The notes beneath the pieces are model-generated. The model did no database searches. It saw nothing but the letters and a program-made list of their open reading frames with translations, and had not been told where the DNA came from. From NCBI GenBank assembly GCA_950097015.1, contig CATNEN010000024.1, forward strand, positions 2,232,001 through 2,296,000: DNA of 64,000 nt. The letters run 5' to 3'. Made by a program: the position numbers and the translations under genes. Every line of letters begins with the position of its first letter. The first letter of the stretch is position 1. Shown one piece after another: positions 12,598 through 61,985 of this stretch. Source of the DNA: Macrostomum hystrix (taxonomy: Eukaryota; Animalia; Platyhelminthes).

Positions 12598-13272
12598 CAG
12601 GGGTAGGCAAACTTATTTGCTGGCGGGCCAAAGAGAGAACCTAAAAGACGACAGCGGGCCGCATTGACTGTATAAATAAGAGATAGGGGAGAGATGAGAC
12701 ACGGGAGAGATGAGACACAGGAAAGACAAGACACGGGAGAGATTAGACACAGGAGAGATTAGACACGGGAGAGATTAGACACGGGAGAGATTAGACACGG
12801 GAGAGATTAGACACGGGAGAGATTAGACACGGGAGAGATTAGACACGGGAGAGATTAGACACAGGAGAGATTAGACACGGGAGAGATTAGACACGGGAGA
12901 GGTTAGACACGGGAGAGATTAGACACGGGAGAGATTAGACACGGGAGAGATTAGACACGGGAGAGATTAGACACGGGAGAGATGAGACACGGGAGAGATT
13001 AGACACGGGAGAGATTAGACACGGGAGAGATTAGACACGGGAGAGATTAGACACGGGAGAGATTAGACACGGGAGGGATTAGACACGGGAGAGATTAGAC
13101 ACGGGAGAGGTTAGACACGGGAGAGATTAGACACGGGAGAGATTAGATACGAGAGCGATGAGACACGGGAGAGATGAAACAGGACACTGTAGATGTCAGA
13201 AGGGGCAACGGGCCGGATTTGGGAGCTTCGAGGGCCGCATCTGGCCCGCGGGCCGGAGTTTGCCGACCCCTG
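12598..13272 (-). mobile_element. hAT (Charlie/Buster-like) MITE, copy 1, carrying a 16-bp minisatellite
   Basis: TIRs CAGGGGTAGGCAAAC and GTTTGCCGACCCCTG; exact 8-bp TSD ACATAGAG with central TA. Strand is arbitrary (opposite to copy 2). Confidence 0.92.
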
Positions 13273-13787
13273 ACATAGAGCGACAAAAGCAATATTAAAC
13301 AAGACGAGCTTTCTTAGAAAACTCATAAAATGCTTTCTTAAAAGCGTTGCAGTTTGTGCGCACAAGCAGACAAGCTGTTTTACTGCTGCTGCTTCTGCTA
13401 TAATTGCAAATTCACGAATTCTAGCCAGTCAAAGCTGACTAAATTGAGTTAGTGTCAGGAGAACCCGCAGGAGAGTACTTGGTGGGGGGTTGAAGCACTC
13501 CCTCGGAGACCACAGACAAGAACCACTTTTTGTTCTGCACAGTCTGCACACTCTTGCGCTGGTCAATAAACTGTTTCGGAGTAAATGTATTGTAACGACT
13601 TAAACATAAAATACTTCTTGTTCGAGTATAAATTAACTCAGCACTCCATATGACAAGCACTTCAAAAGTTTCAAAAAAATTAAAACTATATATATTAAAA
13701 AGCTATACATTTCTTTGTTTCTTCTGCTAAACAACAGGCCAAGTGCTCTTTCTGACTAAACACAGAAAGTTGAACACCGTCTGTGAC

Positions 13788-14953
13788 ATGCTGAGCTCAG
13801 CATTCAGAATGCTTATTGCGATCCTCTGGCTTGGCTTAATAGCTCTGTCCAGCACCGAAACTGCTCAGCCCACTGAGCTGCCACAGCAACTGACTGCTCT
13901 GGACTCTGCCAGTGGTGAGCTGCCGGCGTCAGTTCTGCCAGAATAGCAGGCAATTTCTCATCCGCTAGCGGTCATTCAACCCGCTACCAATACCTTTCTG
14001 GTCATTCAACCCGTTACCAATACCTTTCTGGTCATTCAACCTGTTACCAATACCTTTCTGGTCATTCAACCCGCTACCAATACCTTTCTGGTCATTCAAC
14101 CCGTTACCAATACCTTTCTGGTCATTCAACCCGTTACCAATACCTTTCTGGTCATTCAACCCGTTAGCGATACCTTTCTGGTCATTCAACCCGTTACCGA
14201 TACCTTTCTGGTCATTCAACCCGATAATAATACCTTTCTGGTCATTCAACCTGTTACAAAATACCTTTCTGGTCATTCAACCCGTTACGATATTTTTCTG
14301 GTCATTCAACCCGTTACAAATTCCTTTCTGGTCATTCAAACTGATACTAATACTTTTCTGGTCATTCAACCCGTTACAAATACCTTTCTGGTCATTCAAC
14401 CTGTTACAAATACCTTTCTGGTCATTCAACCTGTTACAAATTCCTTTCTGGTCATTCAACCTGTTACAAATTCCTTTCTGGTCATTCAACCTGTTACAAA
14501 TTCCTTTCTGGTCATTCAACCTGTTACAAATTCCTTTCTGGTCATTCAACCTGTTACAAATTCCTTTCTGGTCATTCAACCTGTTACAAATTCCTTTCTG
14601 GTCATTCAACCTGTTACAAATTCCTTTCTGGTCATTCAACCCGTTACCGATACCTTTCTGTCATTTAAACAGTTATTTATTACCTTCTAGGTAATTAAAA
14701 CATCACTTGACACCTCTAAATTATTTTAAGTACTCGTGCATTTGTACTTGTACTTTCCCGTAAAATTCTCAATTTTTTTATATTTCAGCTCAAGCTCAAA
14801 GCGCTCCAATTTACGATCCAAATCAGTAAGTACATTTCAGTTCGTAATCCATCTTACTTGGCGTAAAAAACTCGTTTTCAACATTTTTTCAGATGCTACT
14901 TCAGATACAACGTGGACGATAAGGTGTACAGAATCTGGTGCGGTTTCTTTTAG
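13788..14953 (+). CDS. Small secreted protein (74 aa) with a C-terminal two-Cys loop; exons 13788-13914, 14789-14825, 14893-14953
   Basis: Signal-peptide-like MLIAILWLGLIALSS. Canonical sites G|gtgagc, tttcag|, CA|gtaagt and ttttcag| join in frame to ...APIYDPNQCYFRYNVDDKVYRIWCGFF*. Confidence 0.75.
13970..14660. repeat. 30-bp minisatellite (TCTGGTCATTCAACCCGTTACCAATACCTT), ~23 copies, inside the peptide gene's first coding intron
   Basis: Period 30. Confidence 0.95.
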
Positions 14954-15124
14954 AGTTGCCGCTTGAAGTTTTATCTCAGAACGACACTTATCTCAAACTT
15001 ATCGATTTTTTAGAGTATTTCTTGTGTAAATTAGTTTCTTTCTCAGCAGAGCAACTCATTTTATATTCCATTTTTCGTATGAGACCATCAAGCCTCCCGG
15101 TATTCTAGGACCGCCACACCACAC

Positions 15125-15700
15125 CAAACCTTGTAGGACCGCCACCCCATCCCAGCCTTATAGGACCGCCACCCCATCCCAGCCTTGTAGGACCGCCACC
15201 CCCTCCCAGCCTTGTAGGACCGCCACCCCATCCCAGCCTTGTAGGACCGCCACCCCCTCCCAGCCTTGTAGGACCGCCACCCCCTCCCAGCCTTGTAGGA
15301 CCGCCACCCCCTCCCAGCCTTGTAGGACCGCCATCCCCTCCCAGCCTTGTAGGACCGCCACCCCCTCCCAGCCTTGTAGGACCGCCACCCCCTCCCAGCC
15401 TTGTAGGACCGCCACCCCATCCCAGCCTTGTAGGACCGCCACCCCCTCCCAGCCTTGTAGGACCGCCACCCCCTCCCAGCCTTGTAGGACCGCCACCCCA
15501 TCCCAGCCTTGTAGGACCGCCACCCCCTCCCAGCCTTGTAGGACCGCCACCCCCTCCCAGCCTTGTAGGACCGCCACCCCCTCCCAGCCTTGTAGGACCG
15601 CCATCCCCTCCCAGCCTTGTAGGACCGCCACCCCCTCCCAGCCTTGTAGGACTGCCACCCCCTCCCAGCCTTGTAGGACCGCCATCCCACTCCAAGCTAG
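15125..15700. repeat. 27-bp minisatellite (CCAGCCTTGTAGGACCGCCACCCCCTC), ~21 copies
   Basis: Period 27 (15241 and 15268). Confidence 0.95.
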
Positions 15701-16471
15701 GAGGACAGCCACCCCAAAATAATTCGCACTATCTCAAAAATTGATATCGATATCAGTTTAGCAGGCTGGCCCGCAGGATTGCACCCGCACTGGTTTTTAC
15801 TTGCACGCGTGCGTGAAAATAAAAGTGCCCATACGAGCGTATTTTGCCACTGGCTGATGTTTTGAGAAACTTAAGAAAATATATATTAAGAGTTTAGAAA
15901 TTCTTTGGAACTTTCTTGCTGAAAGAAAGAGTCTACAAGAAAACAGAGGAACGTTAAAACAGGTAAAATAGGGTGAAGGTGGGTGTACGAGCGTACACTT
16001 ATGTGAGCTCTAGATTCACTTGCAAAGTAATAATTGCATTTAAGTGGTTGCAATGCCTGCAGACAGTTGAGATACAACAACTCAAAATAGGAAAGTTGTA
16101 GCGTTTGCAACAATCCTACTATAAGTAGATCGGTGAAGATTTTTTCTTAAGGAAACGTAGTCCAGTCAAAAAAATAGCAACTGAAAGTCCCATGCACTTG
16201 TACGATTGAAAAGCGTTTAGATAAAAATTAAGGAAGTACAAAAGGTACTCAGCTACGGAAATTCGAAAGTACAGTTGTACAGATGACAATAAGAAAGTGT
16301 CTTTGTTAAAATCATCCTCAATATGAATTACTAAAAACTAATCTATTCAAGTTCTTAATATCAAAATAATATGCCTGCAGCTCAAACAAAGTATTTGGCT
16401 GGTCTAGCTCACAAACGACTCTCACAGCCAAAGTCAGGTTTGGAATCTCAAAGCAGCGCCTGCAAGCCTCA

Positions 16472-19400
16472 TCAGTGGTCACCATCCACAGCCTCGACTT
16501 CTGCCGCAGCTGCCGCGGCCTCCGCCTCGCGTCTCTTCTTCTCTGCCTCCTCTGCAATCAGTGCGTGAGGGCTGCTGGACTAAGCAGAACTGATTTGCCA
16601 CCCTGCCCTGCATTCCCTACACAACTGCCTGCATTCCCTACACAACTGCCTGCATTCCCTACACAACTGCCTGCATTCCCTACACAAATGCCTGCATTCC
16701 CTACACAACTGCCTGCATTCCCTACACAACTGCCTGCATTCCCTACACAAGTACCTGCATTCCCTACACAAGTACCTGCATTCCCTACACAACTACCTGC
16801 ATTCCCGACACAACAGCCTCCATTCCCTACACAACAGCCTCCATTCCCTACACAACAGTCTCCATTCCCTACACAATTGCCGGCATTCCTTACGAAGCTC
16901 CCTGCATTCCCTGCACAGCTCGCGGCATTCCCTGCATAGCTCCCGGCATTCCCTGCACAGTTCCCTGCATTCCCTGCACAGCTCCCGGCATTCCCTGCAT
17001 AGCTCCCGGCATTCCCTGCACAGCTCCCTGCATTCCCTGCACAGCTCCCTGCATTCCCTGCACAGCTCCCTGCATTCCCTGCACAGCTCCCTGCATTCCC
17101 TGCACAGCTCCCGGCATTCCCTGCACAGCTCCCTGCATTCCCTGCACAGCTCCCTGCATTCCCTGCACAGCTCCCTGCATTCCCTGCACAGCTCCCTGCA
17201 TCCCCTGCACAGCTCCCTGCATTCCCTGCACAGCTCCCGGCATTCCCTGCACAGCTCCCTGCATTCCCTGCACAGCTCCCTGCATTCCCTGCACAGCTCC
17301 CTGCATCCCCTGCACAGCTCCCTGCATTCCCTGACCAGCTCCCTGCATCCCCTGACCAGCTCCGTGCACCTACCAATCTCCGCTCGAGCCTTCCAGGTGG
17401 CGCGGTTCTCCTTGATGACGGCCGCCCAGGGTCGGCAGAAGCAGGGCGCGCCGCTTTCGCTGGCCGCTGTGGAACAGAAAGTTGCAGAGCGGGTGGTTGT
17501 TGCAATTAAAAAATCAGTCAATTATTTCAATTTTTAATGCCACGATTGAAGCGAAGTGAACTCACAGTCGTCATCATCGCCAGTGGCGGCGTTGCCTGCT
17601 GCCTTTCGCTGCTGCTCAAACAGCGGCACTAGAATCTTCTCGAGCATGTCGCCGAGAACGTTGAAGCTCGGCTCCATGATGAAGTCGATGAAGCCTGCGG
17701 GTCGGTGATGAAAGGCCTTGCTGAAGAAGTTGTTTAGAGAAAATTTATTTCCCGTTTGAGATTTTTAATTAACAATTTTCGCCGTTAATTAACTCATGAA
17801 ACGGCTAGTTAAATTTGCTACTCGGTGTTTTCATTTGTTTGTTGTTTATCATTTCGTCCATTTTCTGCGTTTTTCGATATTTTTTCTGATTAGACCGCCC
17901 TAGTTAGCTCATTTTCCTAGTTCCTCAAAATATTTGCTCGTCCATCTTTTATATGTACGCTCGTATTAGTATTATTGCAATGTATTAGTTTGCACAAGCG
18001 TAAATTTCTTTGCACAACGATTTGAATAGTTCATTGATATTTGAATAGTTCTTCCATATTTGAATAGTTCGTCGATATTTGAATAGTTCGTCGATATTTG
18101 AATAGTTCGTCGATATTTGAAGAGATCCTATAGATCATTTCATCTCTGTCTCGTAGATGGGTGCCACATGATAACTCAGGCAAATGCCATTCGGTCCGAA
18201 CTCTCACCAACTTGCGACTGGGCCACCATGGTTGCAGTCCTGTCGCACAGAGGCGAGCATGGCAGGTCGAGGGCTCGTTCTCGATCGCCCTGAAATTCAA
18301 TTGAAAATATATCGATGTTTAAAAAATCGACATCGTGTTTTGTGTTAATTCTGCAGCCAGTTGCACATGCAGGTTCGGCTATTGCGTCCATGGACAGGGG
18401 AGGCTGCCGCACCCACCAGCTAATGCTAGTGGGGGGTGAGTCGGTGAGTGGCAGAGCGGTCTAACGCCTTTACCTCTCGCACCAAGGTCCCTGAGCTCGA
18501 TTCCGAGGCGAGGCCACATTTATTTCGGGCACAACCACAGAGAGAATGCTTGGGGGCTTGTCGTGCAATTCACGCCCTTGAGGGCCAACCTCCAAGGCAC
18601 AGTGAAAGTGTAGAGAAAGTCAGGGCAGATATGTAACTCAGGAGTCAGCGGAATGGGCAGAACTGCCTCCTCGCTGGCTGCGGGTCTGGTGTGACGAAAT
18701 GTTTGCAGCCCTAATGCAATTATTATTATTATTATTATGCATGAAGGCATGAACTGTGAATCCCAGTTTGACCTGTCTAAAGAACTCCTCCAATAGTCCC
18801 ACGGTCCAGCGGTAGTGCAGATCCCAGCGTTTGCCAGGATGGCTGATGTCAGCGCAGTGCAGCATCAGGGCCAGCGCCTTCTCCTTGTCGATCCTGTTTT
18901 GGCCGAGTGTTTTTCCGGTGTTTTTTGTTATTCTCATTAGATTCAAGCATTAGATTTCGAGGCATATGCTAAGAAAGACACTTTCTTAGTAGGCAGTGAC
19001 GAGTCAATAATATGTGGAGTTTTTTGTTTAATTAATCTGTCAATAGGATAGACAGTCTAATTTTGTGTGCCTAGAAGAAATTTAAAAAATAGTTATTATT
19101 CAAGCGAGCTACTGGGGAAAGTGTGCCATCGATATTGTTAGGCGCGGCCTGTTTACACGAAACAGAAACAAACAATTTGTGCCGCCATGGCAACTAGCCT
19201 TCGAATAGAGAACAATAAAACAAATTGCACCTAACCAAAATAGGCCAGATGTACAGTCAATTGGGGGAGTTTTTCGCACTTAAACGCACAGCGCTCAGTA
19301 TGGGTTTTAGTTGATATTAAATTTGACAAGCTGGCTGTAGCTGCATAGCATAAAAGTACTTACACGTTGATGAAGACACTGCATTAGCAGCAAGTTTTAA

Positions 19401-61570: not shown

Positions 61571-61985
61571 ATTCAAGATGCACTACCTGGAGAAAAACAT
61601 CTTAAGTTGTTTTATTTAGCTCGATTTGATCGAAAGCAAATGAAAATCTTTTCATTTTAGTTGATTCCTGTGCTTTAAGAGGGTTTGCTGAGAGTGGTGT
61701 TTTTATTCTATATTCTCTATGGCTACGCACAATAGCCATAATGGTAAAAATAATGCTTAGATTGACCCGCATTGAAAATTAAGAAACAAAAACACAATCG
61801 ATTCGATCAATACTTTTTGTCCAGTGGCGATTTTTAGCACAACCAACCGCACGGCAAGCAGCTAGCGGGCTAGACCATTCTCTATATTGAGCCTACGCGC
61901 CAGTTTGAGTGTAATGAAAGTCAATTCAACACTTGCACAGCTGGGCACAGACACCGTATTTGTCGTAGTTGATCTCGTAGTTGCG

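Follow-up and report, generated by a model that had tools for sequence, protein, structure and literature searches.

A single-copy, spliced three-exon gene of Macrostomum hystrix encodes the small precursor of a putative secreted peptide with a C-terminal cysteine loop

Within a 64-kb stretch of the Macrostomum hystrix genome (hereafter the window), at positions 2,232,001-2,296,000 of contig 24, we found a real, single-copy, transcribed three-exon gene for the small precursor of a putative secreted peptide with a cysteine loop at its C-terminus. From its layout and by analogy with known peptides, we estimate a probability of roughly 0.5 that the product is a taxon-restricted secreted bioactive or signaling peptide matured by signal peptidase alone. 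That share includes a small part for a derived peptide of the allatostatin-C (AstC)/somatostatin type. The practical value of the locus lies mainly in a cleanly validated small gene model of a kind missed by six-frame ORF tracks.

The gene lies on the plus strand, and its 74 codons are open from the ATG at 13788 to the TAG at 14951-14953 across coding exons of 127, 37, and 61 nt (Table 1). The initial annotation had described three exons with canonical splice sites assembled across a minisatellite intron. The sequence is as claimed, and both introns are of the GT..AG type in RNA contigs. The first intron splits an alanine codon (G/CT) and the second a glutamine codon (CA/A), and in exon 1 both alternative frames are interrupted by stops. 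The ATG at 13788-13790 is the first ATG of the transcript and has a purine at position -3; the 110-nt leader that precedes it (13678-13787) contains zero ATG and carries an in-frame stop (TAA) at 13728-13730. The position of the TATAAA motif fits a promoter directly upstream of the gene. Downstream of the gene, a motif scan found the sole canonical AATAAA at 15818. A length of at least 74 residues is attained by only 4.7% of the ATG-initiated ORFs in the six frames of the window.

Table 1. Features of the peptide gene and of the minisatellites around it (positions in the window; a slash marks an exon-intron boundary).
Feature	Position	Strand	Details and evidence
Candidate TATA box (TATAAA)	13627..13632	+	Motif scan; 46-51 nt upstream of the 5' end of the longest RNA contig (13678)
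5' leader, colinear with the genome	13678..13787	+	RNA contigs and sequence scan
Coding exon 1	13788..13914	+	127 nt; ends in phase 1; donor G/GTGAGC, confirmed by RNA contigs
Intron 1	13915..14788	+	874 nt; GT..AG; RNA contigs
Coding exon 2	14789..14825	+	37 nt; acceptor TTTCAG/C; donor CA/GTAAGT; encodes (A)QAQSAPIYDPN(Q)
Intron 2	14826..14892	+	67 nt; GT..AG; RNA contigs
Coding exon 3	14893..14953	+	61 nt; acceptor TTTTTCAG/A, RNA-confirmed; encodes CYFRYNVDDKVYRIWCGFF, then TAG at 14951-14953
3' UTR to the reach of the RNA contigs	14954..15156	+	Contigs end about 42-56 nt past 15100, inside the 27-bp minisatellite
Minisatellite in intron 1	13970-14665		30-bp unit, 23.2 copies
Minisatellite starting in the 3' UTR	15106-15715		27-bp unit, 22.6 copies; all RNA contigs break there
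Minisatellite	16607-16996		21-bp unit

Support at the RNA level came from four public sequencing runs, all from a single study and organism; of the words sampled from 13700-15100, about 30% were present in each run. We aligned the contigs of these runs to 13200-15100. Every run (4/4) yielded one contig of 464-538 nt that contains both splice joints and differs from the genome by 0-1 mismatches; the contigs start at 13678, 13699, 13700, and 13713. In all four, the first joint leads from 13913/4 to 14788/9 and skips 874 nt, and the second leads from 14825 to 14893 and skips 67 nt, with GT..AG borders in both cases. The runs themselves have no record as RNA. We read the contigs as spliced RNA, and not as a retrocopy, because both introns are missing from them while the sole genomic copy has introns. 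The junctions 13914-14789 and 14825-14893, which had been proposed as the RNA check of the gene model, are both present exactly as predicted, and transcription and splicing of the gene are confirmed. The word depth of the contigs (6-22) corresponds to modest expression.

A 5' UTR exon, which the initial annotation had deduced from an acceptor at 13737, does not appear in the assembled transcripts. From their starts at 13678-13713 through 13737, all four contigs follow the genome without a break, and the assembled mRNA therefore has an unspliced leader. Spliced-leader trans-splicing at 13737/8 may occur occasionally, as a variant that assembled contigs would leave undetected. In the contig of one run (X2), T replaces A at 14825, so that the codon just before that of the first cysteine reads CTA (Leu) and not CAA (Gln); at a depth of 6, this difference may be either a polymorphism in the coding sequence or an error due to low depth. 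The interruption of the contigs at their 3' end, inside the 27-bp minisatellite, is probably an assembly break.

The encoded precursor is small and has the arrangement claimed for it, namely a signal peptide, a Q/A/T-rich spacer, and a C-x14-C loop at the C-terminus. Exon 1 provides a 42-residue N-terminal part that begins with an n-region bearing one positive charge (MLSSAFR) and continues through a 13-residue hydrophobic core (MLIAILWLGLIAL) into SSTETA. Hydropathy exceeds 2 over residues 5-13 (2.0-2.8 in 9-residue windows), and small residues occupy candidate -3/-1 positions, e.g., A-L-S. Inspection of the n/h/c layout together with hydropathy thus points to an N-terminal signal peptide with predicted cleavage around residues 21-25. 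The spacer that follows starts within exon 1; Gln, Ala, Thr, and Pro abound in it, as does Ser, and it contains four acidic and zero basic residues. As had been claimed, there is no dibasic cleavage site: neither Lys nor Arg occurs from after residue 8 to the first cysteine. The precursor has only two cysteines, both encoded by exon 3, and the second is followed by GFF and the stop. The exon 3 peptide has a net charge of +0.74 at pH 7, a pI of 8.0, and 37% aromatic residues, and the whole mature chain is anionic. No C-terminal Gly amidation signal is present.

These features suggest a simple route of maturation. The signal peptide would direct the 74-residue pre-peptide into the secretory pathway and would be removed at the predicted site. 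Because the chain between residue 8 and the first cysteine is free of Lys and Arg, a prohormone convertase would be unable to free a short peptide. The mature product would be the whole remaining chain of about 50 residues, produced by signal peptidase alone. Its N-terminal part would be acidic, rich in Thr, Ser, Pro, and Gln, and probably flexible, and its C-terminus would form a 16-residue loop closed by one disulfide (Cys56-Cys71) with an aromatic GFF tail. The loop could adopt a two-stranded β-hairpin in which YFRYNV and KVYRIW flank a D-D turn, with the putative pairs C-C, Y-W, F-I, R-R, Y-Y, N-V, and V-K. Such a hairpin would present F, Y, V, I, and Y on a hydrophobic face and arginines together with aromatic residues on the opposite one. 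We propose that the loop may act as the binding epitope of a taxon-restricted extracellular signaling or bioactive peptide, whose release could be neuroendocrine or could occur through glandular or reproductive secretion.

We searched the genome (220,453,370 bases in 42 contigs) for paralogs by DNA and by the proteins of exons 1 and 3, and found only the intron-bearing locus itself. Inside the window, a regular expression for an aromatic-rich C-x10-18-C followed by a stop returned one unrelated chance match (61723-61788) and no paralog. Relatives elsewhere were sought exon by exon. A word-index protein search with exon 1 (48 aa and 61 aa, both including leader read-through; lengths of 26-107 aa covered) gave no match. 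Since this search was blank even for the peptide itself, the product of the transcript is absent from that collection. An exhaustive HMMER search with exon 1 (42 aa) against 1.84 billion representatives found no genuine relative; its sole match was rejected as spurious, being a protein of 570 aa that carries an unrelated tandem repeat (ALPSTETAWW...). No Pfam family matched exon 1 or exon 3 (28 aa) at E ≤ 10; a query of 19-28 aa has little power. PDB sequence searches with these exons matched no chain at E ≤ 10. In the literature on flatworm AstC/MCH-like or Cys-loop peptides, we found nothing relevant. "No relatives" is a weak statement for this gene, because the collections are without other flatworm genomes and the 19 residues of exon 3 are too short for a large protein search.

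In layout, the closest analogs appear to be the Drosophila sex peptide (Acp70A) and DUP99B, which we regard as analogs and not as relatives. Sex peptide has a signal peptide of 19 aa and a mature part of 36 aa, and it binds its receptor through the C-terminal segment bounded by cysteines (PMC11017328). It has in common with our peptide a very small precursor, a mature peptide of about 36-50 residues, predicted maturation by signal peptidase alone, and a variable N-terminal or middle part. In both, the C-terminal segment is bounded by two cysteines, this being the functional segment of sex peptide, and outgroup homologs are not detectable (PMC11017328). Read from the sequence, the gene thus has both the signal-peptidase-only layout and the Cys-bounded C-terminus of the sex-peptide-like class. 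The two peptides differ in that the loop of sex peptide is C-x11-C, contains a W-x8-W motif, and ends on cysteine, whereas the C-x14-C loop described here is followed by GFF; they share no sequence similarity.

This flatworm genus serves as a model of sexual conflict, regeneration, and neuropeptide evolution. Should the product prove to be a bioactive ligand, the genus would gain a secreted signal specific to its lineage, and a case of a peptide signal without convertase processing. A more specific form of this proposal is doubtful: a flatworm hormone or pheromone-like ligand, not described before, that is convertase-free and acts via the 16-residue disulfide hairpin, either as a Macrostomum-specific system or as a highly derived, expanded-ring ligand of the somatostatin/AstC type. 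Were the latter true, the somatostatin/AstC system would be placed in Platyhelminthes. At present, the peptide is one among many small, fast-evolving, homolog-less secreted proteins of such genomes.

Proteins of that description are well known in this genus. Small secreted gland and seminal proteins without homologs are common in Macrostomum and evolve fast (PMC5977470, PMC10468722), and a 2020 RNA-Seq study of M. hystrix covers adults, hatchlings, and regenerants (PMC7336406). An RNA-guided annotation accompanies the published assembly. It is possible, if unlikely, that the peptide is a non-signaling gland product (seminal fluid, adhesive, mucus, or eggshell) in which the disulfide loop is only structural or cross-linking. 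Signal peptides are enriched, and homologs often missing, among prostate-limited and tail-region transcripts of Macrostomum (PMC5977470, PMC7336406), homology-detection failure is known for its reproduction-related genes (PMC10468722), and the Ser/Thr/Pro-rich spacer is compatible with O-glycosylation. A very short, single-copy product without repeats is, however, unlike typical structural secretions.

The rings of known cyclic neuropeptides contain 6 residues in AstC, 10 in somatostatin, and 8 in MCH. Their cores are C-[YA]-F-N-x-x-S-C-F in AstC and F-W-K-T in somatostatin, and MCH, which has a dibasic release, carries (G)RVYRP in its ring. The initial annotation had noted short motif echoes of AstC and MCH in the loop and had already flagged them as potentially coincidental. 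The echoes are present in exon 3, where QCYF and a terminal Phe recall AstC and VYR-x-(W)C recalls MCH, but membership in these families fails on ring size, cleavage site, and core motif, and chance alone is expected to produce agreement over 3-4 residues.

We therefore consider it very unlikely that the gene encodes a divergent somatostatin/AstC (or MCH/urotensin) peptide, i.e., a rhodopsin-gamma GPCR ligand with a ring expanded to 14 residues and non-canonical processing. Precursors of the somatostatin type are short, with a signal peptide and, at the C-terminal end, a single cyclic peptide that is not amidated (PMC5627052). The layout found here fits that type: a spacer separates the signal peptide from a single non-amidated Cys-loop peptide, which forms the extreme C-terminus. 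The single C-terminal Cys-loop peptide, the QCYF motif, and the terminal Phe are common to both, but somatostatin and AstC have a mono- or dibasic site, while our precursor has no basic cleavage site upstream of the loop and lacks the FWKT and FNP-x-SCF cores. Precursors of the MCH type are known from deuterostomes only (PMC5818035); with these the peptide shares a C-terminal cyclic form and a V-Y-R shortly before the second cysteine, but its 14-residue ring has no dibasic site and no profile match. As noted, even at E ≤ 10 no Pfam match supported any of these families with the 19-28 aa query, for which the power is small.

Planarian prohormones also offer no counterpart. The npp, spp, and npy prohormones of planarians (Collins et al. 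2010) are defined by multiple dibasic sites and give rise mostly to amidated peptides (PMC2953531). Our gene shares with them a small precursor with a signal peptide but, unlike them, has neither dibasic sites nor an amidation signal. Its C-terminal motifs were not found in the prohormones of Table S5 of Collins et al., and none of the 51 planarian prohormones has a similar C-terminus.

A resemblance of the loop to β-hairpin defense peptides such as arenicin had also been suggested, and this comparison did not hold. It would make the product a host-defense peptide in which a disulfide β-hairpin of the arenicin/tachyplesin kind sits behind an anionic pro-piece. Arenicin-type peptides are strongly cationic (+4 to +7) and are released from a BRICHOS precursor. 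The peptide shares with arenicin and tachyplesin a disulfide-closed, aromatic- and Arg-rich C-terminal segment of 16-21 residues whose pattern is compatible with an amphipathic hairpin, and the combination of an anionic spacer with a slightly cationic C-terminus loosely recalls antimicrobial peptide precursors. In contrast to arenicin and tachyplesin, the charge of the loop is only about +0.7, or close to +1, the whole mature chain including the acidic spacer is anionic, and the hairpin lacks a cleavage site for its release. Moreover, Pfam showed neither BRICHOS nor another pro-domain, no solved chain matched the loop sequence at E ≤ 10, and the gene is single copy and not part of an expanded variable family. 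The chance of a defense role is slim, and a membrane-active antimicrobial peptide is not the reading that we favor.

It is just as improbable that the transcript is non-coding or spuriously coding, with an ORF and a signal-peptide-like start that arose by chance. An open frame of 74 codons that starts with a hydrophobic stretch can occur by chance in a non-coding transcript, no relatives were found, expression is modest, the locus lies amid minisatellites and a high-copy repeat, and the one difference among the four runs is non-synonymous and adjoins the first cysteine; but the ORF starts at the first ATG and stays in frame across two confirmed junctions, a textbook signal peptide is followed by a polar region, the two cysteines both fall in the last exon, and the joint chance of such features is well below 1% per transcript.

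The placement of the gene tail-to-tail with PDE1 agrees with the initial annotation. A PDE1-type (Ca/calmodulin-dependent) phosphodiesterase gene lies downstream on the minus strand (16470-18946), with a Pfam PDEase_I domain at 18179-18946, and among solved structures its closest relative is PDE1B, which scores 56 bits against 35 bits for PDE4. The apparent C-terminal coding end of this gene, near 16470-16557, is Glu/Ala-rich. The three minisatellites around the peptide gene are unrelated; their units measure 30, 27, and 21 bp and are repeated about 19-23 times, and one of the arrays fills most of intron 1.

In the interval 12600-13285, upstream of the gene, a young dispersed repeat of high copy number has its end in the last 90 or so bases (13190-13285). 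A first look gave at least 1149 candidates for this end across the genome, and identity is 96-100% for the 40 that were scored. RNA contigs connect it, on both strands, to a great variety of sequences, and its summed depth in them runs into the thousands. Since no Rfam family was matched over the whole window, the very deep RNA signal at 13200-13279 is not a spliced-leader gene; it belongs instead to the dispersed repeat. The interval 12600-13285 also holds a 16-bp minisatellite of 30.6 copies (12687-13175) and has weak inverted ends (GGGGT[A/C]GGCAAACT). Altogether, it looks like a MITE-like element that carries a minisatellite and is often embedded in transcripts.
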